A stretch of 64,000 bases of DNA from Selaginella moellendorffii (GCF_000143415.4 NW_003314388.1:62001-126000), one strand, 5' to 3'; positions 30,927 to 64,000 are shown, counted from the stretch's first letter. Made by a program: numbers and translations. The notes: generated from the letters alone by a model not told the origin.

Positions 30927-31822
30927 GGTGTGATCGATCCCCCTCTCTGCCTCTCAAAATCTCGCGAAAATCCCTCTTCCTGACGATCAGACCCTATCGC
31001 CCCACCGCATTCCAAGGAAGACGAATCGATCACGCAAAAAGGAGGCGCCGCCCCGGCATTCGATGCGCCGTGGCTCCGAAATACGCCAGAGGACAAGCAA
31101 CCGATCGATCGTCCCGTGGATCGGATCAAACGGGAAGAAGGCGACGAGGATGAGCAACACATGGAAAATAAAGACACCTAAATCACCACCACTACACCAC
31201 TCTAGTTCACTTTTCACCTTGCGTGAATAGTAACGCACTTTTACATGCGATGGGAATGTCGAACACGTTTTTTTTTCCGGTGGGGCGTTCCAAAAGGTAA
31301 AACAGCGTATTATTTTATGTATTAGTGACAAAGCCTGATTAACCACAAACAACACACACCAACATTGTCCTTTGGACGCTCTTGGCGACTTGCACAGAAG
31401 GAGACAACGTTTGACAACACGGGCGATCGTATCTCCAGTTCAAATGGATGAGGCTAGCTTCTCGGTGTCTCGGCCGGCCGATTGATCCATCGCGAACGAA
31501 AGAAACCAATCTCTCCAAGTTTACTTTCATTTTTTTTCTGTCGGCAAGATCAAAGTGGTCCCTCGAAAAAAGCGGAGACAACATCTCATAAAGATCTTCA
31601 CGTACAAACAAGAGGTCGTAGAAATCGAAAATAAATGCCAACGTGCCAGAAATCTCTAAAGCCACTGCTCGTTTTCCACTCGCAAGCGCCAGTAGTCTTT
31701 CAAGTCGCGCCGAGTCCATCTCCTTCTTCGAGGGTTTTTTCGAGCTTATGTAGACAGACCATCTCCCCAAACTCTTATAGAGCTCAAACTCCTGGCCTCA
31801 CGCTTGTAGCTCGTCTACATAG

Positions 31823-34077: not shown

Positions 34078-34522
34078 AGCCTCGAACTGTAGAGATCGCG
34101 CTGCGCGAGAAGGAGATGAAGAAGAGGAGCGCCAATCTTGATTGAAATAACCCGAAGTAAATGCCATGCAAGATTTCCACCATTGCGTTTTACCGAGTAA
34201 ACCAGCTTGCACAAGAAAACAAAGATGTGTCTCTTCATGGAGTGGAGGGGCCATGTACTAATGCCGGGTGGAAGCGAAACACCACCGCGAGAGGAACTTT
34301 CTTCTACCAAGAACACTATCTTGTTTCGATATCATTTTTGAGAGTTTTGATGTTTTTGGAATCATAGTTCATCGGATTGTATGACGCGTTTGGCCTGAAG
34401 TTCTTTAGCTCTTGGATGTGTAACTTGAAGGTTCTTGCTGCTTTCCAGTTAGTCCAGCGTAACCGAGCACCATATCCATCTTCTAGCCAGATTGGTATGA
34501 ACGTAACCGATACTGTCCAAAC

Positions 34523-36669
34523 TTAAGGTTCCTCGGGAATCGATTTCATGTTTTCACCCTGTTCCTGCTGTTTCCCATATAATGCAGCGTAAACCGGCAC
34601 TGTCCTCTTCACCAAGAGCATACAAAGCCCGGAACCGAAGATACAGACTCCCATGAGGATAAGAAACGTGAGCCTGAAACACACGGCTCCCTTGCACAGC
34701 AAACCATTGGCGCCACTCTCACCTGCATTGAGTTGTTTGGCGGCTTCGCGATCGTAAATGGTCCCGGCAAGGACTCCCGAAAAGAGGATGGTTGCCAGTG
34801 GACTTGCGATGGTGAGAAAGTTGTAGAAGCTGCCAAAGTTTTTGAGACCGAAGAGCTCAGACACTGCCGACGGCACAGCTGCCCAGTGCACGCCGTAACT
34901 CAGTCCCACCAGCAAGGATCCGATGTAAAGTGAGAATGGCCAGGCCATGGCATAGAATAAAAGACCCACAGCCATTACCAGCTGAGCCACAGCTAGCACG
35001 CATGGTCTTGGATACGCGTGAGCTCTGAGGGAGAACAAAGAAGAAGAAAGTAAGCAAAGAGTTCGATATCTAGAGCAATAATAGGCAACTAGAGCAAATA
35101 GAAAGTACCTGACAATCCACTCCGAAACGAAGCCTCCAGCAACTCTTCCCAGAAAGTTCCATATACTTATCATCGAGACAAACATATGAGCGTTCTCATA
35201 GCCTTGTGCCTGTCCCATTTGTCCAAGGTTGTCTATGGCTGTCAAGCCGGAGCCACAACCACAGAAGAGTATTCCAACCATAAGAAGAAAGTCAGCTTTC
35301 ATGAGAGCTTGCCTTAGCGTGAAATCCTCTCCGCGACGAGGCCCTTGTCTTCTCTTCACCTTCACAGCTCCCTCGGCAACAGCTTTGTAAAGATCCGAGC
35401 GCATTCTCGCCAGCTTCAGTTTGAAAAGCGGCTCCGGAAGGCTTCTCGATGCTCGCTTCTCGTCCTCTAGCTCACTGAAGGAGGACTCGTAGCCCGCCGA
35501 CTTGTTGCTATCGCTTGATCCTGCTGCCTCTGGAATCAGCGGCTCCACAAGCTTTGCATCAGCGCCACCTTTGAAGAACTCGAGCTTGAGTGGTATAACC
35601 AGCGGGAAAACCAAAAGCAGCAGCAATCCCAGATAAAAAATCCCAGTCACGAGCTTGCTCACGTCCAGCAAGTCGATGATCAGCAGCACCACTAGGAGAT
35701 AAGCAGCGATCACCAGGCACAGGTTGTAGATAAATCCCATGTTCTCCGATTCGTCCTTGGTGTCTTGCGTGATCCCGGAGCTCTCCAAAGGCCGGATGAT
35801 CGGCATGACAATCACACCCACAATAATCGGTGTCACGGCCACGAGAAGGATGAATGCCTCCTGGTGTGGAGCCAGCAGCGCTCCATAGGCCAGCGTGAAG
35901 ATTGCTCCACACAGCCCGCTAAATCCTTTGAGAATTCCCACCACCGGGCCCCTGTTCCTGGGGAAGTTACGTACCGCCGAGACGAGAGAGACGGTGTTGT
36001 AGTATGATTCTTCGTTAGTACCGATCATAATGAGCACGCACATCTGGAAGAACAAAAGGAATGTCAATGCGTATCAAAAAGGAGATCATTCCAGGACAAT
36101 AATAAAAGCTGAGATCATGCCATCTTTCGCGATTGACAGGAAGTTTTCTACCAACCGGTCTCTCTCTCGAACATGTGAAAGCTCTACATTGCTTACCTCT
36201 GACGAAACTTGCCAGATCCAAAACTCTGGCAATGACAAACAAATCACGCAAAACAACTCTGTACGCTAGAGGCAAAGACCAGGAAGAGGAAGAAAAACCA
36301 AAGAGAAGAACTCACCAGCCAAAGGGGCGAAGGAAGAGCTAAGCTCGTGACGAGCAGCCAGATTCCACCATAGCCGACGAGATTTTGGAATCCCCCGAGC
36401 AAGATGAGCCCCCAGGGAGGGAGCACCGTCGACAGAGATCCAGCAAAGATCCCGACGCTGCCGCCAATGTTCTTGGCGACTGCGAGCGTGTTCATCTGCC
36501 TCTGGTTGTACAAGAGCCTGGCCTTGATCACGGGCGAGTAGCTCCCATAGATGTATCCCACTCCGCCGCACGCCTGGAGCCACATCGACGCCACAAGAAC
36601 CAGCCAGCGGCTCCGCCAAATGCCACCGCCATTGCGCGCTCGGCGAAGGGGATCCCCTCCCCGATCCAT
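34523..36669 (-). CDS. Nodulin-like MFS transporter (NFD4 family), tandem copy C, 3 exons
   Basis: Same motifs; intron 2 happens to be in frame, so it appears inside the 514-aa ORF. Confidence 0.93.
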
Positions 36670-36831: not shown

Positions 36832-39800
36832 TTAATTCTTCCTAGCATTTCGGAGGAACTCCTCAATTCTAGCTTTGAGTTCCACGTTAGGAACTAGCAT
36901 ATCGGCCGTCAAGAGCGAGCGATTGAAAGGATCCGTCTGGAGGAAAGAAAAAAGGTGTCACAGTTATAGCAAAATAATGAAAAGTTTTTTCTTGTTTACT
37001 TGGTCGCTCAGGAGATGTCTCTGTATCGTCGCTCGATCAATCGTGGTTTTCGACGACGGAAGAATCACGGGATCCTTCATCAAAGTGTACTGGGAAAGAA
37101 CACAATCAGCAAAAGCAAAACAAAAGAAAAGAAAGCTTACTTGAATAGGATCCAAAAACTCCTCAGGAACGTCACCGAGGAGAGCCTCAGTGTCCTGAGC
37201 CTCAGACACAGCTTTCTTCACTTTTTCACCAAGCAACACAAAGTCTTGCATCGTTTTCGGTGGAAGCTGATTGATCATATGGATCGCGTCAATTGCCTCC
37301 TTGAACAGCTGTTGCATTACGACCAGACACGTGAGAGAACGAACTCAGAAATTTTACATGTACCTCATCACGATACGAACGACCATCGAGAGATATTGCC
37401 TTTGAAAATTCTCCATGGATGTCACCTCTGGCAAGATTTGCATAGATCTCCACAATCTGCAGGGTATAAGTCAAGCCTTTCTACAACAGTGAACAGGAAA
37501 AGAGGTTACCTGGCAAAGCAGTTCCTTGGGTCTAAATTCGTACTTTTCTGGGTCCCTGATCCTCAGAGCTTTCCTTTGCGTGATCACTAGTTGCAGCAAG
37601 AAGTAATTGAGCATGGATGCAATTCTTTCCACCATTTCCGGAAGAAGAAACGGAGTCGTGATCTCTGAAGACGTGTATTGCAACATCTTGACGTTCTCAT
37701 TTGCCAGAATCATGTCTGAGCGAACATGCTGCAGAGAAAAAAATTAAATGTAAGTACAGGAATGGCACAAAAATAAAACTGATATACTTGTTCAATCTGG
37801 TGGAACAGTCGGAGTCTTTCCTGCCTTTCTTGTGGCGGCCTACGTTCCCACTCTGGAACGTTTGACCTTTCCGCTTCCATCTCCTTCAACTCGGGGATCT
37901 TCTTTAGGCTCTCATCCAGAAGGAAGATACTGTCGTTGATCAGCAGATTCAAGTACCTCAAGTAAAAACCTCTTTCTTCTGTTACAGCAATCTGAGGAGA
38001 CAGGAAGAGTCAAAACGTTGCTGCAAGCATTGAAAAGTTTGTGTTACCCTTTTCCACGCATTATGATGGCAGGGAACGAGCCACAAATACTCGAGGAGCT
38101 CTGCGATATTATGCCGAATATTAAATTTATCATAAAACTACGGTGAGAAAATATGATGGTCAGGCTCGTGCTGAAAGACCTACACGCAAACAGACCTGGG
38201 TATGAGAACCAGTGAATTCGATGTCCACATAAAGTTTCAGCAAGTCTGGAACAAGATGATCCATGGCCAGCTGATGCCCTTCAAATAATGTCGTCAGAGA
38301 TGAAGACAGTGCTGGTGCATAATGGCTGCAAGAAAAAAGAGAAAGAAATCATTGCTATAGCATAATCTTACTCACTTCTTTGAAGGCATCCATGCGTTTA
38401 GAACTTCCACCATTTTTGCCCGCAGGTAAGGGTTCTTCACGTAGAGAGGACTGCTCATAAACATGACAATAAAGCTCATGAACTCGTCCTGCACGAGACA
38501 CATGAGAAACATTCTTCCTTTACCAAATAGAACACGTACCAGAGAAACGCCTTCTAAACCCTTCGGCACCCGTGCGGTAAAAAGCAGCATTTCCAAAGAG
38601 TCCTCTACAAAATGTTCCGGCATGGATGCAAACTCCATCGGGCAGGGTGCAGGGAGAGGAACTCTAAAACCACCAACAAGACTTACAAGCCAAACAATCA
38701 TCAGGCGATAAAACCGGACACATTCTTGCAAGAGTTGCAAGTCCTACAAGATGAAAAAGAGAAAGTGTCAGTCAAGGGGAGAGGCAGTACTGAAGTTTAC
38801 CCGTAAAAATTGCGCCTCATAACAGTATCGGTCTTGTGTAAGCTGCTCTATGTTGTTTTCTGTGTTCTTGATAGTATTTTCTAGATCCGCCGGTGCCCCG
38901 GGGCCCTGCATGGCCTTCAGCGCCTCCAAGGAATCCTTTTGTCTCGAAAGATCCTGACGCATATCGATCTTGTCAGTCAGAAAGACCAACTCTAGAAGTG
39001 ATTTACCTGTAGTAGAGTCTTGAAATCTGAAACAGCTTTGAGTGGTCCTATATTCAGACTTCTGGCTGTCAAAAAGAAACATTCGCAGATAAACGAGAAG
39101 CTTCCTTGACCAGAAACCGAAGCTTGTACTACAGAAGCTGAAGCTCCCTGTGATTGAAGCCGCATCAACTCTTCTTGCTCACGTTGTGCCTGGGCCTGCC
39201 TGAAACCTTCAATACGGGCATAGTTGCGCTTGTCAACCCATCGAGAGAGCTCTTCCGAGGTAGCATGAATAGCTGTCAAGTTACTAACAACAAGAAACCA
39301 TTCAGAGAGGCTCGACGATTTAAAAACTGACCAACCTGAAGTTTACACGGACGTTTTTGAGAACGTAGTTTAAATCAATCTTGTCCATTTTAGTGAACGG
39401 AGGATCAAGAAACGGGTCGCAGAGCTTGAGCATGACGGCGCTCAAGTTGACGAACGACCCCGTGCTACCATTTACAAGCGGGTTGACCTACAAGGCACGC
39501 ATCAAGAGGAGAGCAAAACTGTGATGGAAAAGGAACAAAAACCTGAATTTGTGCTCTACCCGCATTCTTCTCTATGAAATCTCCTAAAAAGCCCAAGACC
39601 TGCTCTCGTGTATCGACCGAGCGAAGCAGCTTGAGCACTATCTCATGCAGTCCATCCTGGAGATGGTGCAAGCAAGACTTGATGGCCGAACAAGAAGATA
39701 GTATATCTGCCGGCCTCCTAGACGAAGCATCTGAAAAGCATTGCCGGCTGCAAGAAGAGAAGGAGAAAGCATTAGAAAGCCGAAAAAGAGAAGCAAAAGC

Positions 39801-40652
39801 ACAATACCCGATGTCCGGCTCGCCTTTCACAAACGCTACCAAGTCGGGAACAGCAGCGATGTGGAAGAACGGGCCCAAGATGGTCTCCAACTCGAAAATC
39901 CTTCCATTGACATTACTGCCCCTGACGTGAAAGTTTGGGTGCCTCACCAAAGCTCTAGCGAGTGCTGGATACGAGACCAACGTGACGAGAATCCCCAGAG
40001 GCTTTTGGAAGGGTCCGAGAGCCGAGAGCCTCATCACACTGTCGCGAAGGCCGATGAACACCCCGTGAAAGATGGCGTCCAACTCCTCGCCCTGGAATCT
40101 GGCTATGGTCTGCTCGATGAAACCTTGTGGTAGATTGGAGCCGCTGTAACCGGAGCTCTCGGAGGAGGGCGACTCGTCCATCATCGCGGCCAGTAGCGGC
40201 GATAGAGGCTTGGAAGAATTTCGCTGGAGCTCCTGCTGTGGAAATGTTCCTGGATGGATGATCGAGATCCCGGCATAGGAAACAACCAATTCCTTGACTT
40301 GGTTGAGAGTCTCCTGGATCCACACCATGGATTTCTTGTCCTTCATGGCCTGGGATTTGCGGCCCTCGTCCACGGCCCTCCGATAGCAGGCGATGAGATA
40401 GAGCAATGGCTCCTCCCGAGCGTGGAAATACGTCGTGAGCCTGTCCATGAGCGCGCGCTCGATCAGGTCCCGGGACAGCAGCATCGGCCGATCCTCGCTC
40501 ATCAGCTCCGCGGCGATCTGCTCGAGAAAGACGAGATTGGAAGAAGGGGCATTGCTCGCGTCAGCTGGGGGCGAGAGAGTGAGCTGCAAGACGCGGCGGA
40601 GCATGAGATCTTCAATCTCCTGGAGGCTCCTCTCCGCCTTTGGGATCGCCAT
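36832..40652 (-). CDS. UFD2: U-box ubiquitin conjugation factor E4 (UFD2/PUB1/UBE4), multi-exon
   Basis: SFICECFFLTAR, PEHFVED, KNPYLRAKMVEVL, LLINDSIFLLDESL, U-box PEEFLDPIQYTLMKDPVILPSS..IQRHLLSDQTDPFNRS. Confidence 0.96.
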
Positions 40653-41329: not shown

Positions 41330-43020
41330 AAGTTAGGTCAAAACATTTTTTTGGGTATTTGGGGCAAGTGCAATGGTTTTTCTATGAGTAAATAGAGTTT
41401 GTTATAGTGATAATAAAGTATTAATTTCTCATATTTTTAATTACACATTGAAGTTTTTAACATTGCAATGATTTATTGTGTTTGGCTTATTGCACAAACA
41501 CATCTTACCAAATAAAAAACCTTTAAACACACAATGATGGTATGTTTAACTTATAACATCTAAAAGCATTCAAAATCTAATTTGCATACTGAAAAATATT
41601 ATATCCATATTCCTGAAGTATAAACAATATAATGAGTAAAACCAAATTAACATGGAGTGGAAATTCTCTCAATATAAAAAATTATATTGAATTGGACTTT
41701 AATGACCACTAATGTATACTTATATGTAAACAAATGTTACACTTAAAATATTTTTTTGTGAGTCATACATAACAATAATTAAACACATATGTGTTTCTTT
41801 TCATATATTTTGCAAAATTTAGCAATTTTTTATAAACTTCTGACCCTAAGTACACCTCCTCTCTTGGCAAATGTACTATAAACAATAATGACTTAAAAAA
41901 CAATCTATAAAAGTTTAAATATATATATTAAAAAGCCTTTTTCCCAAATTGATTAACCTTAAACATCCAAATATTTTTATGTGTCATTAGGTTTGAATGG
42001 ATAACCTCTTAGGAAATTTAAATTTATAGTATCAAAAACAATTTTAAGTTTAACTTTATTAATTTTTAGGGGAATCATAGTGCATATTAAAATTGATATT
42101 TAATAATTGAATTTATTTTAGTTGAACTTGACCTAAAGGGTGAAGTGTCAAAAGAGCAAGGTTTTTAATAGAATTATAGTTCTTAACTTTTGTTTACGAG
42201 GGCGTAAACTTGTAAGGAAGCAATAAAAAAAATATTTATAAAGGTTTAAATATAAAATAAAAGACTTATAAACAAGAGTGTATCTTTTTTATAAAAGATT
42301 TTAAGATATTTGAGGTTAAGGATTTTAAAATATTTAGGGTTTGAGCCTCCTTGGATTTTGCTGAGCTGAATAAATTCTTTGGAAATTCAAATTCAAAAGT
42401 TAGTTATATAGGTTTTTTTAGGCTTTCTAAATTTTAAATAACAATAACATTGCAGACAATAATACATATTTGCCATACATATATGGGACAATAATATATA
42501 CATGTGTTCAGAATATTATTTTGGGAGACATATATATGTGTTAATAAAAATTTAAACATATATGGGTGGCATAGGTGGAACCCTAAAGAATAAATACCCC
42601 ATCATAAAATAAGCATTTCATATATACAAAATCTAAATCAGTGCCACATATGCAATTTTTTACATTACATAAATTTCACTCCATGTTAAATATTTTGATT
42701 GGTTAACACTTAAGGTTTATGGGTGTGATATTTTTCAGCATGCAAACTTGATTTTGAGTTTAGATGGCATGGGCTAAACTCACAAACACTCTATGTTTAA
42801 AACTCTCTCCCTAATGAGGGTAATGAAAAGTGTTTTGCACAATAAATTTAAGTGCAATAAACCATTACAATGCTAAAACTTTTAATGAGTAATTAAGAAT
42901 GCAAAAAATCAATAAAGCTAACACATTACTAAAGTTATAACAAAATCTAGTTGCTCACAAAAAAACTATTGTGCTCAACACCCCAAACACCCAGAGAAAT
43001 ATTTTGTCTCACCTCCTAAT
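41330..43020. mobile_element. Degenerate AT-rich non-autonomous element with long imperfect terminal inverted repeats (foldback/MULE-like)
   Basis: ~41330-41670 is an imperfect reverse complement of ~42665-43020 (e.g. ttaacatggagtggaaatt / aatttcactccatgttaa). No ORF. Boundaries approximate, TSD not identified. Confidence 0.55.
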
Positions 43021-43836
43021 AAAATCCAATGGCATAAAGATTAACTCTGTGATACTTACCCAACACTGTTGATTTTCAGCGAACATAGGGCTCATAATCA
43101 CCTGCATTACATTGGCTTGCTTAAGATGACTTATGAGGATCTGGAGAACAAGAAGGGAATTCTTCTATAGTTGTTACTTAGCCATGGCTTCCTTTATTTT
43201 ACTGCTTCTTCTTCTAAGTTAAAGATTTGTGAGTTGCCAGAGATCCTGGAGTCATCGAGGTTTGTGGTATGTGCATAATTCACAAGATAGATGAGAGTCT
43301 TCCTCTCTAATCCGCTAGCAGCAGACACTTTCAGGACGTAGAGGCTTGCAAGATATAATGGTCAATAGAGCTCTTGAACCAAATAGTCCAAGTATCTTGG
43401 AGAAAGAAGAGAGGAAGAAACCAAATACTTGAGAAGCATAAGAAGATGGCTGATAAACTGGAGCACGATGAGCTCGAGGATCAACAATTGATTCATACTA
43501 GGACTCAAGGAGTAAACCTTACAAACCAAGCAGCAAAATGAAATGGAGATGCTTCTCCAAAAGGGGACCAGCTAGGAGAACGATCTGTAGCAAATCCATC
43601 ATATTTTCCTCCTCCCAGTGACATAAGAACATCCGAAGTAGTACCAATCAAACCTAGGGAATATGGTTGCCTTGGATTTTACAACTCGAGGACACACAAA
43701 GCACGAAAGAGAACGTTTTCTCCTTGAGGTTAGGTTAACCAGAGTTTCACATAACTAAATTTTAAAGTGTATGTAAAAAGAATATAAAGTGTTTATATGT
43801 AATATGGAACTAAGAAAAAAAATGTTTACAAACATC

Positions 43837-45230
43837 TCAGGAAGAAAAGGCTGCTACAACCATATCCACGCTTCTCTCAATCTCTTTCAAGTACTCAACG
43901 AGAATTCTTTGCTTGTAAGAGCCACCTTCCTGCTTATAAGCTTTTGCTCAAAAAACCAAGAAAAGAAAAAAAAAATGAAGCAATGAGACTTACTGTTCTA
44001 AGAAGAATTCGCTCAATGCGTTTCTTAGCCATTTTGCGAAGATCTACGCTCTTAACTGGGCCACCGCCCAAGTCCACTCCGGACCTTATCATGCTATCCC
44101 AAGCTTCGCTGTCAGCTATAAAAAATAGAAGTTGTCTAGCTAACCACGAGAAAAGGAAGATGCAAAAGCGAACCTGAGATTATATTCTCGAGCAGTTCCT
44201 CAGCTTCGTCTACGACTCCATCTGCTTGCATCAAACAAAGAAAAAAGGATTACAGCGTAAGTTTGTTGTGAGAAACGATTGAAGCTACAAACCTCTCTTG
44301 GCATAGCTTGTCTTTGCAAGAAACGTTGCTGCATAAAGTTGTAGCACTTTTTGTAGCAAAGCCAGCAATCCGGGCTTATCAGCATCTTTTTTGGCCTTTC
44401 TAGCAACGAAAAATGTGAAAATATATGAAAATACAAGAAAAGGAAACCTTCCATCCATACCTGACGAAGTTGAGCGTTCACTTCTGCGAGAAAACCATCA
44501 TCCAAGTAGCCGGAACTTTCCCTGTGCATCAGCTCCTGAGATTGAGAAAGAAGGAAAAAGGAATTTAAAAAGAACAAACATCTACAAAAACAGAGATACC
44601 TTTCTCACTCTTTGCAGCGCATCAGGATCACGAGGCGGCCAGACAATTTCTTCGTTTTTGGAGCCTGCGACTGGCTCTAGAATCGCCATAAGCACATCTG
44701 TGGAAGTTTCAATCTTTTCCTGTTGATTCAGACAAATAAACATTCTTTCAGACAAAAATTGGGTGATAACAGATATGTGTAAACCTCTGTCTTCTGTACA
44801 ATGCGCTCGACTAGCTGCATTATGTTGGATGCAAGCTCTTCAAGATCCACCTTCCAAATTTTATTTTTTACAACAAGATAATACGAAATGGATGAAACCT
44901 TACCTCATCATCTTCCGATTTACAAAGGTCTGTCCTGGTAGCCAGTCGAAGCCAGAACTTACTATCAAACGCCAGGACATTCTCCGCAACTATCTGTGGT
45001 AGCTAGAGAATAAAAACGAAAAACAAAACTTTCAGTGATCATTATTTAAGTAGCCAGTTCTTTCCGACTCGCTCACCAGTTGGGAGTCTGTGCTCCGCAG
45101 CTTATCTATCAATCGATCAATCTCTTCGCCGCTGCTCGATTCTGATGCCTGGCTGGAATCAGCAGCAGCAGCACAAATGCAAAAGTTTCTCCTTGTCTCC
45201 GAGCACCTGAGAGAGATATAAGCAACGAAA
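43837..45230 (-). pseudogene. PRDA1: PRDA1 copy 1, 5'-truncated (exons 1-2 and promoter detached by the rearrangement)
   Basis: Near-identical to 53524-54908, then breaks within intron 2 at 45230. Confidence 0.88.
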
Positions 45231-45236
45231 TGATGA

Positions 45237-45381
45237 ACGATGAACTCGAGTGGATGGCGATGGAGCAGGGACAGGCCATGGAGGACGAAGAGCTTCTCAT
45301 GAATGAAGCGTTCTTTGATCAGATCCGGGGCTCCGATGGGTTTGAGGAGGGCAGGGGAGGGTTTGAGGATGTGAATGCCGG
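45237..45381 (+). pseudogene. CTF18: Inverted fragment of CTF18 exon 1
   Basis: Reverse complement of ~59067-59219 ([20 protein letters not shown]) with a 9-nt deletion. Confidence 0.9.
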
Positions 45382-46097
45382 TGCGTGTCCAGCGATTTTT
45401 TTCCCTTTAGGTAGAGTTTGATTCTTGATTTGCAGCTGCTGTTTTGTAGCTATTCTTCGATTGATAATTATGGACACTCAAATCCAATAACTTAAGAGAA
45501 TCAAAGCTGATTTGTTTCGTTCAGAATCCCCTCCCTTTTCTTTTGAAGCTGTTGTTGCAATGGCGACAATGGCGGCTGCTGCTGCTTCAGCATTCTGCTG
45601 TATTCGGTCTTCCAATGGAAATGGCCACTGGGTAACGAGGGTTCTCCGGTGTTTCAGATGTAAATCTCTTTCTTTCATATTTTATTTTGTTAGGCTTCTG
45701 GATACGTTCCAACGAGGCCCTGGGTTCTTCGAGTTCATAGCATTGCGGAGCCGAATCTGCGAATGTGAGTCACCTCCTACCCTGTGTTTTGTTGGTTTTT
45801 CGTTGCTTATATCTCTCTCAGGTGCTCTGAGACAAGGAGCAACTTTTGCATTTGTGCTGCTGCTGCTGATTCCAGCCAGGCATCACAATCGAGCAGCGGC
45901 GAAGAGATTGATCGATTGATAGATAAGCTGCGGAGCACAGACTCCCAACTGGTGAGTGAGTCGGAAAGAACCGGCTACTTAAATAATGATCACTGAAAGT
46001 TTTGTTTTTCCTTTTTATTCTCGTTTGATAGTAAGTTCTGGCTTCGACTGGCTACCAGGACAGACCTTTGTAAATCGGAAGATGATGAGGTAAGGTT
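45380..46097 (+). pseudogene. PRDA1: Inverted PRDA1 upstream region + exons 1-4 (ATG at 45560), with a 35-nt deletion removing an acceptor site
   Basis: Reverse complement of ~54573-55325. Confidence 0.9.
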
Positions 46098-46220
46098 GAC
46101 AATGCCCAAATGCCCAAATGCCTTACAAATTCTGCTAGCCCAAATATTCTGTTTAGCAGGTCAGAACACTCCGTCTATTTACAAAAGATTCTGTTTACAA
46201 AAAAAAGGGAGGGAAAAACA

Positions 46221-49124
46221 TCAATCCACAAACGGCAGAGGCACCGACTTGACAGCACGAAACTTTCCAACGTTGTTGAAATGCTCGTTCTCCAGCCTAG
46301 ATCAAAGACATTGCGAATTTTAGGGCCAGAGAATCGAAGAGATGGAAGAATGTGACGAGATTTACCTGTAATAGTTCCATTGTCCACGCCTGATAACTTC
46401 CAAGCTAGCCACGATGAGCGACAGCCCCTTGGGATTTATCCCTGGCATCGAAATCGGTATCAAGGATTGGAGCCACGCGAATCTCAGCAAAATGTTTGAC
46501 ACCTACATTGTCACCGAGAGCTTTAGAACTGAAACCGATAAGTTGATGGCAAGAACTTACAATGGCGAAGTAGTAGACCGACTTGTATGGGATAGCGAGC
46601 TTGTCCCTGAGCCAGGGATTGGCGGAGTTTCGCTCGAGAAGGCCCCAGTCGTAGACTAAATCCCAGTAAGTTGAGACAATGGCTGCTGTGGCTGAGATGG
46701 CGATGGTGAAGCCCAGCAGCAGTGGATCCTTGTAGTATCCGTAGGCCAGCCTCGCTGCCACGGCCAGGATCGCCGAGAAGTATTTGAGAGCGTTGTACAG
46801 CTGCATCACATCCTTCTCATCGTACCAACGCCGTAGACACTGTCATGAGGAGAAGGAGCTACGTAAGTTACCAAGGAGGAGCTCAACAGAATCTGCGAGA
46901 CGCATGAAGTTACCTGCGAGAAACGGCACCAGTAAGGTAGCAACGCCATGACGAATCCAAACGTGATGAAGGTCGGGTTCTTGAGGCAGGCATTGCTGTT
47001 GCGGTCCTTGAAAAATCCACCACCGAAGTAGCATAGAACGTATTCCAAATCCCTCAGTGCCGGAACCTGCAACTCAAAGTTTGTCACAAAGCTGAGAATG
47101 AGGCTGGCCGATTTTACCTGACTCGTAAGCTGGTCTGCGAGAAGAAAATCCGTGATGATAACCTGTCATACAGACAAAACCATGAATACCAACTTGATAT
47201 ATCACGAGAGACACTGCGAACCTTGTAGAATGGCGTCAATAGGCAATGCCAAAGGGCGTTCAGGAAAAAGTAACGGGTGGCGCGGTAGAGTATGTTGAAC
47301 GGCATAAACAGAAGCACGACCATTCCCTGAAGTACAACACGGAAGTTCAGGCATTTGGTACAAAAAATCTTCTAAAGCAAAATCCTTACGGCGACAACGA
47401 GGAGCGGGATGATTTCCTGATATGTTTGGCAGCATATCTCACCAGCCGTCACTTGCAAGTGTAGTATCAATCCACTCAGAGCTAATGTGCTCAGCCCCGT
47501 TGCGAGTAAAAACACATCTCGGAAGCGTAGCTCGGACTTTCGGTTGAGCCCAAGAATAAACGTGTGATTTATTCTGGTCCTTCTCCACATATATATGTTT
47601 AGTCCGTAAAGGAAGAAGTGCAGCATTACTGCTGCAAGCATACTGTAAAGAGAAGTATATCTCATGAGAAAGTTAGACAAAGATATTAGCTGAGGTCTCA
47701 CCTGAAAATCGGGAACACTGCATCCATGTATGTCGTAGCATATTCACGAACATATAGCCTCTCGACGCGAATGGTTAAAACGAGAGACACTAGAAGAGCA
47801 ACAGAGAGACCAAAGAATACACCTGCGCAAACAAAGCTGTTAAGTTAACCAGGCACCTTGAGGACTCTCAAGAACATCGCATTACCTACAAAGAATGATA
47901 TCCGGTGCCTCTCATTCCGGGCCTCGGGTCTCAAAACTTGCATTGCGTCGCGACGGTTTGAATCCGTGAAATGCTTGGTGAAGAGTACCTCTACTTTTTC
48001 CATAAGCTTTTGGATCTGAAAGTGAGAAACATCGAGTGGCATTGACACCGATGGAGAATATTAATGTGCGATCACTTACAATCTCAGATTGTCCGATGTA
48101 TGAATCTTCTACGGCTTTCATGTACTTCCTTCCAAGGTTCCGCTGAGTAACCTGGAGGCATCGTACAAAGAATCTGTGTCAATTAAACCGGTGGATGTCA
48201 AAAAGCTGGCTGACCTTGTCGTATTTCTTCAGGAGCTTTGAAAACGCAATTATGTTCAATGAGCTGCAGAGGAAAAGGACAACATGAAAACACGAACTTT
48301 CGAAAAGCGAACTTACGTACCAAAAGTTTCTCAAGATGTAGAGGCCCTTGTAAAACTCCACGAAGGCGTTCTGAAGCATCTCCTCGGCTCGCTTCAGTCG
48401 CCGCGAGTTTAAGTTCGTGATGGACTTGTTGGCCAGCTCCGCGAAGAGAGCAGCCAGCGCGTCGGCTGGCTTCGCCGCAGGGATGTCAATCTTTATCTGT
48501 CGCACGCTCCCTCCATCTTCCTCCACCACGGACAGGTGGCCATGGCTGCTAGCGTTGCTCTCCCCGTTTCCAGCGTCTAAGTTGTCCACGGATTTCTTTG
48601 CCGAGAGGAGAGCTTCCATCTGGGAATCCAGCGCCGTCGCCTGCGTCACGAGCTCCTTCTCCTTGGACTTGTAAAACTTGTTGAGCTTGGCCAGCTCCTC
48701 ATCGAGCAGCCGAAAGAACGTTCTCTCGAGCTCGTTGTGCGGGCTACCAACACCCAAGAACGCTGTCTGGAACTCCATGCCATCGCTAGTTTGCTTTGGC
48801 TCGATCTATATCCACAAAAGAAAAAGTGTCACAACGTTAAGTGAATCCCGAAGAAGAAGAATCTCATACCATGATCATCTCTTCCTCCCGTGCTTCCGGA
48901 GAGGTCGGCGATCGCGCCCCCCGCGGCGAATGCGCATGTTGGAATCCGCTGACGAGCCTCCGGAAGTTTGAGATCCTCCTGGAGAGGTGCGGCTCGCTCT
49001 CCTCTTGCCATTGCTTCTTGATCTTGGCCATATGCTTGACGATCTCCTTGCCCTGCCGGTAGTCCAAGTACGCCTCCCTCCATTCCGGGACCTGCTGCGT
49101 CTCAAACTGCTTGCCAAACTTCAT
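46221..49124 (-). CDS. PHO1: PHO1-family phosphate exporter (SPX + EXS), copy 1
   Basis: [92 protein letters not shown]. Confidence 0.94.
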
Positions 49125-49703
49125 CGCGATCGAGATCGATTCAGCGCGAGCGACAAAGAAATATCGATCGGCCCTCCCTCCTCGCAGATCCAAATCGGCC
49201 CCACTCTAATCGAAATGCTGCTTTCTCAGATCGAAAATCTCACCTCGCACTCCGCTTCAATCCAAATGCCAGTTAAATCTCATCTACTGCGGGAGCTGGA
49301 GAGATTTCCAGCGTTATAAGCTAGGGCTTTATTAGAGCTCTATAGAAGTCATTACAACTCGATCCACTCTAATGTGTCAGAAGAAAATCACCATAGCCAA
49401 ACACACTAGGACAGACTGTTTGGCACACGTGGAAGAAATGCGGATTAATATATATAGCCTCTTGACCTGGACTTGAGTACGTTAGAGAGAAAAAAGGCTT
49501 TCAAAGGATATAGTAAGCAGTCATGTGATGTTTCTTGTTGGAACTTAAATATCAAAAGGGCTGCAACCAATGATGATTCGTGGACATCAACTATTATATA
49601 AGTGGAACTGAGGTTATTTTGCCCGTACACAAAAGTTTTAGTGTTTTTATACACATGTCCAAAGGAGCCAGCAGTAAGCGCGAGGGATATATCCGGAAAG
49701 ATT

Positions 49704-51582
49704 TCAATCTTGACAAGGCCACTTGATTTTTCTTTCCCTACTCCTTCTCTGCGCTTGTCGCCACCGATGAAGATGTTTGGACTTTTTGGACTTTTTGTGC
49801 GCGTTGGCGTGGCTCCGGCTCGGCTTCTTCACCTTCTTGCTACCACTGGAGTGCCAAGTTTTCTAGTCAGTTTGCTTGAGAGTGCAAGCTCAAGTTTGAC
49901 TCTTTACCTGAAGGTACTCAACACCAAATGCATCGCTACAGCCGCTGGTAGCACCAAAACCGCCATCGCCTAAGAGAGGAGAAGTAAATTAGAGCTGGCA
50001 AACACGCAACCGGAAATAAATCTCTTACGAGAAACCAAACGAGCTCTTTACTCGCCACCTCGTGCTTCAATAAAAGCCCGCGAACTGAGTTTTGCATCTG
50101 AAAGTAAGTGAGAAGAATCAGAAGCTGCCAGTAATATTCGGCTTCTAAGACTTACCTTATTGTGATAATTTACAGCCGAGGACAGTGCCTCCTTGGAAAC
50201 TTGCTGCACCTTTTCGATGTGAGGAGCAGCGTATTCTTGAGATTTCTCGTAATAAGGACGGACGTATGCAGCAGCTTTGTCTACGTGCGGCCGAAGCTGT
50301 TTCCGTAGAGACTGCAAATGAGAGAAAGGATGTAAGAAACCTATCCGATACATGGACGATTGCAGACCTTGATGCGAGGCATAAGTTGTTCGTTCGCCTT
50401 AACAAAGTGGGGCGACAAGTGAACATTATAGGCCTCTGACACTTTAGAAGCCAGAACTTTGCCGTTCGTGGAGACAGTACTCCAGTACGCACTCGCAGAA
50501 GGGCCTACTTTCTGGAGAAAAAACGAAGCTCATCTTAAAGCCATTGACAAAAGCAAGATAATGTTTACCTTCTTAAGAGTATCTACGTGAGGTTGAGCCC
50601 ATTCCTTCGCCGTTGTGGCGTGTCGAGAGGCCTGATACAGATAATGGTTATAGATGAGACATGCTATTGAAGAAATAATCGGCTTACGTGCTCCGCAGCT
50701 TTCTTAAAAACTGGTTCACCGTGCAGGGTCCAATACACTGCCGAAGTTGACTATACAGGCACAACAGATGAATGAAAATATCAACAAAAACACTTTTTAC
50801 CTGTATCTGCGCTAGTCGGCCCGCGGTTCATGGTGGCAGCCAAGCCTCGTAAACCTGCAAATCTTGTCACAACGAACGACGAATGAAAAATCGAAACACC
50901 TTATAAAGTTCCTGAGCCTTTGCAGCTGCCTCGGACTTTGCCTTTAGCAGAAGATTCTCAGCTATCTTACGTGCCTCTTCAGCATCACGCGTTTTCTTTC
51001 GCAGATGGGTACTGCTCTTCTCGGCCTGGTTAGAAAAAGAGAATTTTTCTCGCATCAAAGGATTCGAAAAGGATAATCTTCGTGCAAACCTGTGCGAGTT
51101 TTGTGGTTAGCTCATCAACTTTGGCTTCCGACAATTCCAGCTTGTCTTGCAACTTCTGTGTGTTTTCCCTCGACTTTTTCAAGTTCCCCTCGAGTTGTTC
51201 CACCTAAAAGTCGCGGTGTTACGACAGAACAACAAGAAAGTACGACCGACAAATTCCACCACCTTTGATAATTCTTCCGCCTTTGCTTTAAATTTTCTTC
51301 TCCAAATCGCCAGATGCCCAGTTCTACCCACAGCACAGTCACTTCCAGTCCAAAAAATCGATCTATAGAACTCACCTGGAGAGAATCTATTTCGCTCTCC
51401 AATGAAACGATTTTTTTGCTCTTCTCAAAGGACTCTTGCTTCGCTTGCTTTAAGTTAGAATCTGGCAAGGAGGAAAAACACATTAGACAATGTATGGATG
51501 ATAAAAGGAATTTTCTCTACCTGTGACCGATAGCCGTGCCTCCAGCTCTAATACTTGCTTGTGGAGCTCAATAATCTCCCGA
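49704..51582 (-). pseudogene. Coiled-coil 'myosin heavy chain-related' membrane-anchored protein, copy 1, disabled
   Basis: Exons give AWLPP*..WTLHGEP..WAQPHV..SKELVWFLAMAVL. Premature TGA at 50828-50830, 5' end cut at 51582, 15-nt deletion and last-exon frameshift relative to copy 2. Confidence 0.75.
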
Positions 51583-53523
51583 TTTAAAATATTATTTTGT
51601 GAGTCATACATATGTTTTACAATAATTAAATATACATGTGTTTTTTTCATATATTTTGTAAAATTTTACAATTGTTTACAAACTGCACCTTAGGTACACC
51701 TCTCCTTTTAGCAAATATACTATAAACAATTAACAATAATAATTCAAAAAACAATCTATAAAAGTTTAAATAAATGTCTTTTTCCAAATTGGTTAAGATA
51801 TTTAGCGTTAAGTGTCATTAAGTTTAAATATGTGACATCTCAGGAAGTTAAAATTTATAGTATTAGAGTAGTTTTATGTCTAACTCTGTTAATTTCTAAG
51901 GGAATCACACTATATATTGAAATTGATATTTGGTAGTTAAATTTACTTCGGTTGGATTTGACATAAAGGGTAAGGTGTCAAGAGAATAGAACTTTTGGAA
52001 GGACTGTAATTTTCAATTGTTGTTCATAAAGGCGTAAACTTGTAAGGAAGCAACTAAAAAAAAATAAATTTATAAAGGTTTAAATATAAAATAAAGGATT
52101 TATAAAAAAAAGTGTATCTTTTTTATATGCTTAAGGATTTTAAAATATTTAAGGTTAAGTGTCTTTGGATTTATAAAGCTAGATGAGTTCTTGGGAAGCT
52201 CAAATTCAAAAGTTAATTATATAGATTTTCTTAAGCTTTATTTATTTCATGCTTATTTTATGGCAGGGGTAGAAGCCTATAAAATGTATTACTAAAAAAC
52301 ACAAATATGTTTAAATTTTTATAACACATGTGTGTGCCTCACAAAATAATATTCTAAACACATACATGTATTGTTGTCCCCATTTTCACATAGTAAATAA
52401 ACATGTATTATTGTTTGCCATGTATGCATGGCAAACAGACATATATATTATTATTTGCAATATATGTATGGCAAAGTCCAAATCAATGCCACATATGTAA
52501 TTTTTCACACTATATAAATTTCATTCCATGTTAATTATTTTGACAGATCAGCACTTAAAGTTTGTGAATGTGATATTTTTCAATACGCAAGTTTTATTTT
52601 GAATTTGAATGGCATAGGCTAAGCTCACAATTTAGTGTGTAATTAAGAATGCAGAGTTAATGTGTTATAGTTGAACAAGATCCACTTGCTTGCAAAAAAA
52701 TTATTGTTCTCAACACCCTAAGCACCTAGAGAAATGTTTTGCCTCACCTCTTAATAAAATCCAATGGCATAAACATTAGCTCTGTGATACTTACCCAACA
52801 CTATTGCTTTTTAGGGAACATAGGGCTCACAATCAGCTGCATTACATTGGCTCGCTTAAGATGACTTATGAGGATCTGGAGAACAAGAAGGGAATTCTTC
52901 TATAGTTGTTACTTAGCCATGGTTTCCTTTACTTTACTTATGCACTAGCTTCTTCTTCTAAGTTAATGAGAGATCCTGGAGTCATCAAGGTTTGTGGTAT
53001 GTGCATAATTCACAAGACAGACGAGAGTTTCCCTCTCTAATCTGCTAGCAGCAGACACTTTCAGGATGTAGAGCTTTGCAAGCCATAATGGTCAGTAGAG
53101 CTCTTGAACCAAAAGTATCTTGGAGAAAGAAGGGAGAAGCATTCAGAGTGAAGTAGACTGGAGCATGATGAGCTCGAGGATCAACAATTGATTCATACTA
53201 GGACTGAAGGAGTTAACCTTACAAACCAAGCAGCACAGTGAAATGGAGATGCTTTTCCAAAAGGGGACCGATCTGTAGCAAATCCATCATATTTTCCTCC
53301 TCCCAGTGACATAAGAACATCCGTGAGACAGCTCCACATGCTTAAGTATAGGGAATATGGTTAGGTTCAACAATTTTTCCTTATCTAAAATGAGGTTAGG
53401 TTAACCATAGTTTCACAAAGTAATCCTTTAGTTCATAACTAGGGTTTATGAGAAATGCAACATTACCTTGAAATTTTAAAATGCATGTAAAAAGAATAAA
53501 AAGTGTAATAGTTTATAAACAAC

Positions 53524-55145
53524 TCAGGAAGAAAAGGCTGCTACAACCATATCCACGCTTCTCTCAATCTCTTTCAAGTACTCAACGAGAATTCTTTGCT
53601 TGTAAGAGCCACCTTCCTGCTTATAAGCTTTTGCTCAAAAAACCAAGAAAAGAAAGAAAATGAAGCAATGAGACTTACTGTTCTAAGAAGAATTCGCTCA
53701 ATGCGTTTCTTAGCCATTTTGCGAAGATCTACGCTCTTAACTGGGCCACCGCCCAAGTCCACTCCGGACCTTATCATGCTATCCCAAGCTTCGCTGTCAG
53801 CTATAAAAAATGGAACTTGTCTAGCTACGAGAAAAGGAAGATGCAAAAGCGAACCTGAGATTATATTCTCGAGCAGTTCCTCAGCTTCGTCTACGACTCC
53901 ATCTGCTTGCATCAAACAAAGAAAAAAGGATTACAGCGTAAGTTTGTTGTGAGAAACGATTGAAGCTACAAACCTCTCTTGGCATAGCTTGTCTTTGCAA
54001 GAAACGTTGCTGCATAAAGTTGTAGCACTTTTTGTAGCAAAGCCAGCAATCCGGGCTTATCAGCATCTTTTTTGGCCTTTCTAGCAACGAAAAATGTAAA
54101 AATATATGAAAATAAAAGAAAGGAAACCTTCCATCCATACCTGACGAAGTTGAGCGTTCACTTCTGCGAGAAAACCGTCATCCAAGTAGCCGGCACTTTC
54201 CCTGTGCATCAGCTCCTGAGATTCAGAAAGAAAAAAGGAATTTAAAAAGAACAAACATCTACAAAAACAGAGATACCTTTCTGACTCTTTGCAACGCATC
54301 AGGATCACGAGGCGGCCAGACAATTTCTTCGTTTTTGGAGCCCGCGACTGGTTCTAGAATCGCCATAAGCACATCTGTGGAAGTTTCAATCTTTTCCTGT
54401 TGATTCAGACAAATAAACATTCTTTCAGACAAAAATTGGGTGATAACAGATATGTGTAAACCTCTGTCTTCTGTACAATGCGCTCGACTAGCTGCATTAT
54501 GTTGGATGCAAGCTCTTCAAGATCCACCTTCCAAATTTTATTTTTTACAACAAGATAATACGAAATGGATGAAACCTTACCTCATCATCTTCCGATTTAC
54601 AAAGGTCTGTCCTGGTAGCCAGTCGAAGCCAGAACTTACTATCAAACGCCAGGACATTCTCCGCAACTATCTGTGGTAGCTAGAGAATAAAAACGAAAAA
54701 CAAAACTTTCAGTGATCATTATTTAAGTAGCCAGTTCTTTCCGACTCGCTCACCAGTTGGGAGTCTGTGCTCCGCAGCTTATCTATCAATCGATCAATCT
54801 CTTCGCCGCTGCTCGATTCTGATGCCTGGCTGGAATCAGCAGCAGCAGCACAAATGCAAAAGTTTCTCCTTGTCTCCGAGCACCTGAGAGAGATATAAGC
54901 AACGAAAAAACAACAAAACACAGGGTAGGAGGTGACTCACATTCGCAGATTCGGCTCCGCAATGCTATGAACTCGAAGAGCCCAGGGCCTCTTTGGAACG
55001 TATCCAGAAGCCTAGCAAAATAAAATATGAAAGAAAGAGGTTTACATCTGAAACACCGGAGAACCCTCGTTACCCAGTGGCCATTTCCATTGGAAGACCG
55101 AATACAGCAGAATGCTGAAGCAGCAGCAGCCGCCATTGTCGCCAT
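53524..55145 (-). CDS. PRDA1: PEP-RELATED DEVELOPMENT ARRESTED 1-like chloroplast nucleoid protein, intact copy
   Basis: ENVLAFDSKFWLRLATRTDLCKSEDD, IVWPPRDP, LDDGFLAEVNAQLRQAK, LQKVLQLY, KKRIERILLRTEGGSYKQRILVEYLK; transit-peptide-like N-terminus. Confidence 0.88.
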
Positions 55146-55356
55146 TGCAACAACAGCTTCAAAAGAAAAGGGAGGGGATTCTGAACGAAACAAATCAGCT
55201 TTGATTCTCTTAAGTTATTGGATTTGAGTGTCCATAATTATTAATCGAAGAATAGCTACAAAACAGCAGCTGCAAATCAAGAATCAAACTCTACCTAAAG
55301 GGAAAAAAATCGCTGGACACGCACCTAGAAAGGAGAAGAATACACGATCATCGCGC

Positions 55357-58300
55357 TCATAGAAAATCACGCATAAGGACGGGCTTCTTCACAGCGTTTG
55401 TAAATCCCTGAAGCAAAGAAAACGCTCAGCTATGCACTACAAAAAGAAGCGTCCGACCTCGTGAAATTTAAAGAGCAATGGCCTCGAATCTCTTTTAGCT
55501 GTTGAAACTTCCCGTTTGGAGGAGTGGCCTTCCGTGCTTCCTGTTCTAAACCTGCAACGACAGTGTGGATTTGAACAGCACAACGAGCCTACCTGTCAAA
55601 GAAAGAAGCTTTCTTCAAGACAGTGTTTGCCTTGACAACTTCGGTCTTAGATGTTGTCACGAGTTTTCCAGTGGATGTTGAAGCTGATACGATTGTCCTC
55701 TTTTCAATGGTAGTAGACTTGACAATGGTATTATTGTTGGCAGAACCAGATGGCTTCTGCTGGAATGGTTTAGAGGACCGCTTTGCAGTTTCGCGTTTTA
55801 TCGCTTCTATTTCAACCTGAAATATCGCATTAAGCATGCATTCTTTGTGTGTGAGCTTCTGCACCTCGTGGCTCAGCATCTGTTGAATGGTTGAAGAAAG
55901 TTCTCCATGGCTGTGGGCGTATTCCTGATAGGCAAGGAAGAATGAAATTCAAAACTTATAAAACAGAAACAATAACGATTACCTTGAAGGTTATAAAGGT
56001 GTGCAGTGGAGGATCTAACAGGAATGCTTCCCCCGAGAACTTTTGTACTGTGAGATTGTCAGCCTTGGACTTTTTGTACCGAAGTCCATAACTTATCATT
56101 GTATCCACAAGCTGCTTAAGGTCTTCGCGTTCTTGCTGAGAAAGAAGATTAGACGCAACCTGCACGTACCACGGCATCAGCACGCTGAAAATACGTTATC
56201 TAGTTCTTACGGGCCGCAACTTGGGAGCCAAAATCGATAACAAAGGAGAAAGAACATCCTGGATCAAAGAGGGACACAAAATGGTTCGCGATAGGGCCGG
56301 TGTCATTGAAGTCAGCCACGACTTCAAAATTTCTGTGTTTGCTGCATGGACTTGACGATTTCTGGAACGACAGAAACCCATCAGTACAGACTTTCTACAA
56401 TATTAAACCATACCTCTGAAATGATTTCGGCCACTCAAGCTTAGGCCGAACAGGCTGCGAAATCAAACGGCGAATAGCAAGTTTAAAAGAAGGTCGATAC
56501 GCTGTTTCATGCAGAGTGAAAAAGGTCTTTGGAACAAGAACAAACGGTACCATTCAGAAAAAACTGCTGCTGCGAAGCTGTTTTTCGTCCAAAAATATCT
56601 GACGCGCCTATCACTTCCAGGCATTGAAGCTAAGAAGTAGCAATGAAGACCAATGAGGCAGACAAAAACCAATTTCGATATTTACCGTCTTTTGGAGGTA
56701 TACATCATGATAATGCACATGCAAGAAGTTCTCAAAAATACCCTCCATTCCAAGGTCATACTCTCCGCTGCATAAAAACATTAGCAAATAAGCAAATAAT
56801 TCTAGAACTTTAGAACGTACTGGTTCGCATAAACGTCATGGACCCGACTGAACTCCGTGTGTGCCTGCTTCATTCTGGTTCTGTTTCTAGTCCAGAATGT
56901 CTAGCAAAACCACTTAAGCAGATAGAAAATGAATTGGAAGCAACTTACCTCAAGCCATATGTCGAACATGCTGCTGGTCATGTCTTTTTTACCAATAACC
57001 TGAGAAGCAACTTCTAGCTGCAAAGTAGAGCGCCTTAGAAAGTTTGATAAAAAAAATGGCAGGATTACCGCTTTCAGCGACTGTCCGTTCCGAAACAAGA
57101 ACTGAAGAGTGTTTAAACACGAGCGAATATCTGATTCTGTAATTCGAGTCAAAAATTTGCGCCGACAGCAATTGTTTGTTACCAGTGTGCACAGCGAGGG
57201 CAGCTAGAGCGCGTGTGTCCACCTTGTAACCTTCTGACTTGCAAATGAAATTTAGTCTGCATAGACACCGTGAGTGGTTTTGAAGAGCAAATGAAAAAGT
57301 TACAACCTTGTCACTATCCTATGAGGACTTGGAGGAGAAAATATATGAATCCTGCCAAAACTGCTGTTAAGATACAAAAGAGATGGTGTTGTGGTACCGG
57401 GCAATTTGACGCAAAGGCCGTAAGGCAGGAGCATAAAGGTCGTTGCAAATGCAAATGATCTGTGCCACAAAAGTTGGCGAGGTTCTCTATAGGACGCAAG
57501 CTTACGGGTCTAGATAGTCGAGCGATGGCAGTCTTCTTCCTTTGAGGTTTGGACATTTTATCGTCGTTATCATTTCGTGACACAGCCTTCGCCTCTGCAG
57601 AAAGCTGTAGCAAAAATGATTCAATTAACGTTTTGTAAATTGACACATACCAGATCAACTAAAAAACTGACAGACGATTTCCCTTCCGTGCCGCTGACCG
57701 CTCCGTCTATTTCATCAAGAATCTGTCAATGACATAGCATTCAGTAAATCTTCCACATTTTCTCTACGAGAGCAGTGAAAAATTACCAGACAATTTGGCT
57801 TAGAATCTCCTGTGACTGTCTTCATTTGAAGAGCATCCAAAATTTTGGTCTGAAAAGAGGAGGCTGTGCGATCATCACTGGCATTAATCTGCATGAGTTG
57901 AAACGATACATACAAGGAACTTGAATTACAGGAACATGCCAACCTCGACGACGCGGTATCCACAATGCTTTGCTGCAACATGTGCAAGCGTCGTTTTCCC
58001 AAGGCCCGGAGGGCCACATAAAAGAAGGACCTGCTTCAAAGAAGCCATAAAACTGTTGTACATGTAGCAGGGACCAAAGAGGTACCTTTTGATCTGGCCG
58101 GTCACCTGAAGAACTCTTATTATCACCTGAAGAGCTCTTGTCATGACCTGAAGAACTCTTGTTATCGTTGACGCTGTTCCATTTGCCCTTCGCCTCATAT
58201 CGTTTAAACTTGTTATCAGAAGGTTGTTGCCCAAGCTTGTGTTGTTGCAAAGCTTTGAGAACCTCTTTAGGTGTAGAGTGCCTTGTAACACCGTAAACGC

Positions 58301-59235: not shown

Positions 59236-59366
59236 AGCCGCCACAACTCAAAGCCCGCCAAAATGCCTTACATAGTCTGCTAGCCCAAATATTCTGTTTA
59301 GCAGCTAAGAACATTCCGTCTATTTACAAAAGATTCCGTTTACAAAAAAAAAGGGAGGGAAAAACA

Positions 59367-63870: not shown

Positions 63871-64000
63871 GATATAGATAATGGTTATAGATATTATGCT
63901 TTATTTCGTTAAAGTGGGACTTATTCAGTAAAGTGGGACATTAATTAGCATGTGTCCACATGCCATTTCCTAGTACTTAATTAATATTTATTAATATTTC

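Follow-up and report, generated by a model that had tools for sequence, protein, structure and literature searches.

The locus described here raises the question of how two pieces of one gene have come to face each other as a long inverted repeat, and whether they act together as a source of hairpin RNA. It lies in a stretch of 64,000 nucleotides (nt) from the lycophyte Selaginella moellendorffii (GCF_000143415.4, NW_003314388.1:62001-126000). This whole stretch is the window, and all positions are counted from its first letter on the strand presented. The window carries a tandem array of the genes PHO1, CTF18 and PRDA1, and in one unit of the array, block 1, an inverted duplication of a PRDA1 piece is found. 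The original prediction considered this repeat as a candidate newborn hairpin-RNA locus able to silence or tune PRDA1, a gene that Arabidopsis requires for transcription in plastids and for the development of chloroplasts. Our analysis suggests that the inverted repeat is probably a by-product of a local rearrangement in block 1 of the tandem PHO1-CTF18-PRDA1 array. Overall, we regard the locus as a real rearrangement scar, for which a hairpin role is possible but unsupported.

The inverted repeat consists of a left arm at 44896-45230 and a right arm at 45798-46097, with 6 mismatches, one 35-nt gap and a loop of 567 nt, much as had been described before (about six mismatches, a 35-nt bulge and a loop of ~570 nt). 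A repeat finder applied to 43000-48000 reports it as two collinear pairs, namely 45006-45230 with 45798-46022 (225 nt, 97% complementary) and 44896-44971 with 46022-46097 (76 nt, 100%). The three-way alignment of the left arm, the right arm and block 2, the second unit of the array, confirms this layout and gives exactly 6 substitutions between the arms. The gap sits in the right arm, which measures 300 nt versus 335 nt for the left one. For a 300-bp repeat at 98% identity, a chance origin is impossible.

The left arm, PRDA1-sense on the minus strand, has exactly the sequence of block 2 54573-54907. It contains the last 24 nt of intron 2, exon 3 (45077-45206), intron 3, exon 4 (44904-45002) and 8 nt of intron 4, and it runs unbroken into PRDA1 exons 5-11 on its left. 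The right arm, on the plus strand, is an inverted copy of the same piece with 6 substitutions, and its 35-nt deletion removes the acceptor of intron 3 along with roughly 31 nt from the start of exon 4.

The origin of this arrangement can be read by comparison with block 2. Self-BLAST of the window shows two tandem blocks, block 1 at 41743-50655 and block 2 at 51584-63892, the latter reaching the window end. Along the minus strand, block 2 has the gene order PHO1, CTF18, PRDA1. Its segments follow each other as a-b-c-d-e-(f)-g, where a is 52674-54572, b is 54573-54907 (the PRDA1 piece found in the arms), c is 54908-55325 (PRDA1 exons 1-2 and 180 bp upstream of the ATG), d is 55326-59065 (3740 bp, most of CTF18), e is 59066-59219 (roughly CTF18 codons 6-57), f is a piece of about 37 nt containing the CTF18 ATG, and g extends from 59257 onward. 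In block 1, the same comparison gives the order a-b / e'-c'-b' / g, with primes for inverted segments, and this is the anatomy of REARRANGEMENT.

In other words, segment d is absent from block 1, and the loop is made of two inverted fragments. One of them, e' (45237-45381, plus strand), is a piece of CTF18 exon 1 covering about codons 6-57 without the ATG, and compared with block 2 59066-59219 it has 4 substitutions and lacks 9 nt. The other, c' (45380-45797, plus strand), is the inverted PRDA1 5' stump, with 180 bp upstream of the ATG, exon 1 (45560-45631), intron 1, exon 2 (45694-45764) and most of intron 2. To the right of the repeat, 46112-50655 matches 59257-63892. The beginning of this match, 46112-46220 on the minus strand (block 2 59257-59366), is at once the retained PHO1 3' untranslated region (UTR) and the CTF18 upstream region. 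Hence the original prediction was correct in placing sequence from upstream of the CTF18 ATG here; block 1 has lost the ATG and the 21 nt adjoining it. PRDA1 is thereby present in block 1 as two broken pieces, that is, a headless body with exons 3-11 on the minus strand and a 5' stump with the promoter region and exons 1-4 on the plus strand, the latter facing the PHO1 3' end.

All three new junctions carry marks of their joining. At J1 (45230/45237), positions 45231-45236 are a filler of 6-8 nt that repeats an adjacent heptamer, i.e., a templated insertion. J2 (45380/45381) shows a 2-nt microhomology, and J3 (46097/46112) has a filler of about 14 nt with a duplicated octamer at 46098-46111. 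Judged by their sequence, these marks are signatures of end joining. The flanking bases at the junctions are all explained by block-2 sequence, and no repeat or transposon is found at the breakpoints.

The age of the repeat is a separate matter, and here the two arms tell different histories. In the three-way alignment, the left arm equals block 2, and every one of the six substitutions, like the deletion, is found in the right arm alone. The tract without any difference between block 1 and block 2 covers 44676-45230 (555 bp) and ends exactly at J1. Over the rest of the PRDA1 body (about 840 bp), 13 substitutions and 4 indels separate the blocks (1.55%). At this level about 8.6 differences would be expected in 555 bp, and the probability of observing none is about 2e-4. 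The inverted segments c'b' differ from block 2 at 12 of 718 positions (1.67%), which is the ordinary divergence between blocks. In addition, residues S6 and Q22 of right-arm exon 3 are also found in an off-window third PRDA1 copy and in one copy on another scaffold, and at these positions the left arm and block 2 share R and E.

Zero differences over 555 bp, together with the shared older states, point to a left arm derived from block 2 and a right arm of block-1 lineage. That is, judging from the shared residues, the right arm is the original, older block-1 lineage, and judging from the zero-difference tract, the left arm is a recent copy from block 2 or has recently been converted by it. Since the arms descend from different paralogue lineages, their 2% divergence is a paralogue divergence and not the age of the repeat. 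The description 'newly formed' in the original prediction thus holds for the present sequence of the left arm, which is very recent, but the 2% difference does not date the repeat, and the separate lineages of the arms had been missed. Methylation-driven C-to-T decay of the right arm has also been considered and rejected, as 4 of the 6 differences are transversions.

The two broken pieces differ in their state as well. In the block-1 body (exons 3-11), all splice sites and the stop are kept, and 5 of the 6 nt that differ from block 2 are synonymous, so constraint acted on this copy through most of its history. In the stump copy, at least 4 of the 5 exonic differences are non-synonymous, and together with the 35-nt deletion they mark it as decaying.

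Based on the above observations, the following course of events may be proposed. In block 1, the segment between PRDA1 intron 4 and the CTF18 start codon would have been inverted. The breakpoint piece b (335 bp, PRDA1 exons 3-4) would have been left on both sides in inverted orientation, piece d (3.7 kb, most of CTF18) would have been lost, and all joins would have been made by end joining with filler or microhomology. This adds an inversion, a breakpoint duplication and a 3.7-kb deletion to the earlier anatomy, which had rightly recognised an inverted PRDA1 repeat, a partial duplication by our exon model of exons 3-4 with intron 3, and had missed these three events. The anatomy with its junctions, the pattern of divergence, the identity of the genes and the potential to fold are shown, whereas the order of events is inferred. 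In one candidate order, a staggered-break duplication would have come first and conversion by block 2 later. In the other, the broken end of a simple inversion would have been lengthened by repair synthesis with block 2 as template, and end joining would have followed.

The mechanistic class of the locus is that of inversion-breakpoint duplications. The model of staggered-break inversions predicts an a-b / ... b' pattern (Ranz et al. 2007, PMC1885836). As in those inversions, formerly unique genic sequence is here duplicated in inverted orientation at the inversion edges, the breakpoints are free of transposons and pre-existing repeats, and the joins bear end-joining marks (PMC1885836). The differences lie in the tiny scale (about 4.7 kb inverted, 3.7 kb of it then deleted), in the single duplicated breakpoint inside one tandem-array unit, and in one copy having since been homogenised with, or copied from, the neighbouring paralogue. 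Staggered breaks would give copies that are identical at birth and diverge equally afterwards, which is not what we have found, as all 6 differences fall on the right arm. This unequal divergence requires either a later conversion of the left arm or its origin by repair synthesis.

Whether the repeat is used as RNA depends on what is transcribed through it. The block-1 PHO1 gene (46221-49124, minus strand; stop codon at 46221-46223) points into the repeat, as the original prediction stated, and its stop codon is 124 nt upstream of the right arm. Matches in Pfam to SPX (E = 5e-25 and 4e-16) and EXS (5e-22 and 2e-12), with SPX at the N-terminus and EXS at the C-terminus, indicate that PHO1 is an SPX-EXS phosphate exporter. 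CTF18 of block 2 (55589-59235, minus strand, ATG at 59233-59235, 3' end approximate) is recognised as an RFC-like clamp-loader subunit from its exons, since the top five PDB matches of the P-loop exon are CHTF18/Ctf18 (best E = 9e-10) and a second exon matches CTF18 only. In block 2, the PHO1 stop (59367-59369) and the CTF18 ATG are 131 nt apart on the same strand. Because only 131 nt separate the two codons, the PHO1 3' UTR and the CTF18 promoter and 5' UTR must overlap. Block 1 keeps 110 of these 131 nt.

The only clue to transcription is an indirect one and is provided by the RefSeq model LOC9650244 (XP_002992052.2, partial), which covers the headless PRDA1 body with exons 3-11 at 43837-45316 on the minus strand. 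Residues 1-80 of XP_002992052.2 are 100% identical to the translation of 45316 to 45077. The first exon (45077-45316) crosses J1 from the antisense of the CTF18 fragment, and the model is 5'-partial, with 37 codons across J1 that have no protein homologue. Its frame stays open for 30 more codons beyond 45316, up to a stop at 45407-45409, so that no stop forces the end at 45316. RNA support past the stop at 45407-45409 would predict a complete coding sequence from a downstream ATG, and we therefore infer that the LOC9650244 RNA starts in the loop. Such a start would lie close to the inverted upstream region of PRDA1, a region that may be active bidirectionally. An RNA started in the loop would contain the left arm only, and the model thus gives no indication of an RNA spanning both arms or of a hairpin. 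A plus-strand RNA from the stump would not pair with it either, because both are PRDA1-sense. Among the PRDA1 matches, no assembled transcript of this species was found, as every close match traces to NCBI, UniRef or comparable records and not to a run assembly. An exact look-up of 7 open reading frames (ORFs) crossing or abutting the junctions gave no match, and since 3 block-2 control ORFs were equally unmatched, it carries no information. No paper mentioning the LOC identifiers of this locus was found.

With these data, the alternative explanations can be weighed. The locus could be an active endogenous inverted-repeat small interfering RNA (siRNA) locus, in which an RNA polymerase II transcript of the minus strand, arising from the retained CTF18 upstream region or from PHO1 read-through, passes through both arms, and its ~300-bp stem is diced by DCL4, DCL3 or DCL1 into siRNAs acting on PRDA1 of blocks 2 and 3. 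We consider this unlikely. The structural side agrees well with it. As the original prediction had proposed, a minus-strand RNA would fold into long double-stranded RNA; the transcript from 46230 to 44850 is predicted to form stems of 225 bp and 76 bp, together ~300 bp, with a minimum free energy of -743.2 kcal/mol. The closeness of the PHO1 stop to the right arm and the retained PHO1-CTF18 interval would serve it, too, and the left arm matches block-2 exons 3-4 at 100% identity. A class of endogenous inverted-repeat siRNAs is recognised (endoIR-siRNA, PMC10827316), and of its features the locus shows only the structural one, a long near-perfect repeat. S. moellendorffii has orthologues of DCL1, DCL3 and DCL4, but it is without DCL2, a 24-nt peak and phased siRNAs (PMC5569507); dicing of a long hairpin in this species is therefore no more than a possibility.

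The evidence from the locus itself does not follow the structure. LOC9650244 begins inside the loop with no stop codon forcing that end, and the minus strand has canonical AATAAA hexamers at 46014-46019 in the right arm and at 45681-45686 in the loop. Nothing in the arms suggests that complementarity has been kept, as the right arm has its 35-nt deletion and pseudogene-like substitutions. A search of Rfam found no family, microRNA (miRNA) families included, above noise. The proposed silencing or tuning of PRDA1 by a newborn hairpin locus is unsupported. It is still less likely that the repeat, with PHO1 read-through or the orphaned CTF18 upstream region as its driver, generates hairpin siRNAs as a dosage brake on the remaining PRDA1 copies of the triplicated array. 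An antisense effect without any hairpin may be imagined instead. The block-1 PHO1 3' UTR, whose native downstream context is partly lost, would extend into the right arm, carry antisense PRDA1 exon 4-3 sequence and pair in trans with PRDA1 mRNAs, or a plus-strand transcript of the stump would run toward the PHO1 3' end and form a cis-natural-antisense pair with it. The geometry allows it (PHO1 stop at 46221-46223, right arm from 46097, stump with its ATG at 45560 pointing at PHO1), and natural-antisense siRNAs are a known class (PMC10827316). However, the retained 110 nt of native PHO1 3' UTR have U-rich and UGUA-type motifs, by which polyadenylation may be normal, and we consider this explanation very unlikely. 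That the inverted segment is a mis-join of the Sanger-era assembly is hardly credible, even though a three-copy tandem array in two assembled haplotypes is a setting prone to mis-assembly. Within 900 bp, three separate new junctions all bear filler or microhomology, and the inverted copy has its own substitutions and its own 35-nt and 9-nt deletions, with a divergence from block 2 that equals the ordinary inter-block value. The 37 homologue-free codons of LOC9650244 are, moreover, most easily explained by RNA reads crossing J1.

On the other side, several points weigh against a by-product of rearrangement as the full account. Both candidate orders of events fit, and DNA from block 3 and the second haplotype would be required to choose between them. 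The repeat does have PHO1 and the retained CTF18 upstream region directed into it, and with the PHO1 stop only 124 nt from the right arm, a degree of read-through is plausible. That a hairpin transcript is absent is read only from the end of one RefSeq model, and rapidly diced precursors would be rare in RNA sequencing data in any case.

Gene-derived inverted-repeat siRNA loci that are read from a foreign promoter are known from several plants, namely Arabidopsis PAI1-PAI4, the soybean CHS I locus, rice Lgc1, maize Mu killer, Antirrhinum SULF and Mimulus YUP. All of them share with the present locus a partial inverted gene duplication with intact paralogues nearby. As in this class, unrelated upstream units (here PHO1 and the CTF18 upstream region) point into the repeat, and as in rice Lgc1, a deletion has brought the parts together. 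To our knowledge, a read-through transcript, siRNAs and a silencing phenotype have been demonstrated in all six, whereas the locus studied here is known from sequence alone and the annotation clue suggests a start in the loop. A further comparison is with young MIRNA genes, which show a short foldback with a discrete miRNA and miRNA-star, or belong to a known family; arms of 300 nt and a loop of 567 nt are not of this kind. The birth of proto-MIRNA genes from inverted duplications of the genes they target goes back to Allen et al. 2004, as cited in PMC10827316. The present arms resemble such genes in being homologous to the would-be target over their whole length, and differ in that 300-bp arms around a 567-nt loop are far from a miRNA-like foldback, with discrete processing only hypothetical.

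The putative target, the intact PRDA1 gene of block 2 (53524-55145, minus strand, RefSeq LOC9650247), lies 9677 bp to the right of the repeat, in line with the ~9 kb given by the original prediction. It has 11 exons and 332 codons according to our exon model, which runs from exon 1 at 55074-55145 through exon 11 at 53524-53616. For its identification, a 113-codon ORF (exons 9-10) was searched against a representative library, and the fern protein found was then used in a word-index search. The exon translations were kept as separate alignment rows, not spliced, and the alignment served as the query of a profile search, which gave 635 plant matches at E<=1e-10. Exons 3-11 are collinear with fern, moss, lycophyte and conifer proteins, and align without gaps to the Diphasiastrum protein at 45-73% identity. 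This full-length collinear homology indicates that the gene fits the PRDA1 family (IPR038961). No Pfam family was matched by PRDA1, and no match in the PRDA1 searches carried the name PRDA1 from its source. The label is used because the Physcomitrium and Picea homologues that match here also sit in the PRDA1 tree of a rice paper, one per species (PMC11896912).

According to the same paper, PRDA1 is a plant-wide family that is single-copy in most species (PMC11896912), and in S. moellendorffii it is tandemly multiplied. Cluster listing and alignment give three PRDA1 loci on this scaffold of 407,360 bp, LOC9650244 in block 1, LOC9650247 in block 2 and LOC9650250 (332 amino acids). Since neither block in the window matches LOC9650250, it probably belongs to a third block off the window. 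Two further PRDA1 loci are found on a 4,143,896-bp scaffold, which is taken as the other assembled haplotype. A false tandem placement of two haplotypes as blocks 1 and 2 has been considered and rejected, as the intergenic divergence is 11-19%, and three loci lie on this scaffold and two on the other. Over 41743-63892, the divergence between the blocks is patchy, with 0-4% in genes and 11-19% between genes, and this pattern suggests ongoing gene conversion. As for annotation, RefSeq models the block-2 PRDA1 with 285 or 282 amino acids from an ATG that straddles exons 2 and 3. The window nevertheless has intact exons 1-2, expected to encode the transit-peptide region, and the third copy is modelled at 332 amino acids including them.

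Other features of the window may be listed briefly. The tandem array has as its immediate left neighbour a minus-strand gene (37000-40652) with a ubiquitin elongating factor core of the UFD2/E4 type. A Nodulin-like / NFD4 major-facilitator transporter gene occurs three times in tandem at 28776-36608, also on the minus strand, with periods of about 2.6-3.1 kb and 62-88% identity. Direct repeats of at least 300 nt at 9360-9659 and 14574-14873 are 100% identical and 5214 bp apart, and they are probably the long terminal repeats of a very young retrotransposon.

The present value of the locus is modest. It offers a micro-inversion in a tandem array that can be resolved cleanly, together with its duplicated breakpoint, its deletion and a tract of gene conversion, and the rearrangement also explains the odd 'partial' RefSeq model LOC9650244. 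If the repeat did act as a dosage brake on PRDA1, phosphate status or cell proliferation would be coupled to plastid transcription, and this in a lycophyte without DCL2 and most 24-nt siRNAs. Were transcription to run through the repeat and its RNA to be diced, a lycophyte would provide a datable hairpin locus derived from a gene, with its donor, its targets and its borrowed promoter all within 20 kb, and it would offer a natural case for the birth of silencing loci and miRNA genes outside the seed plants.

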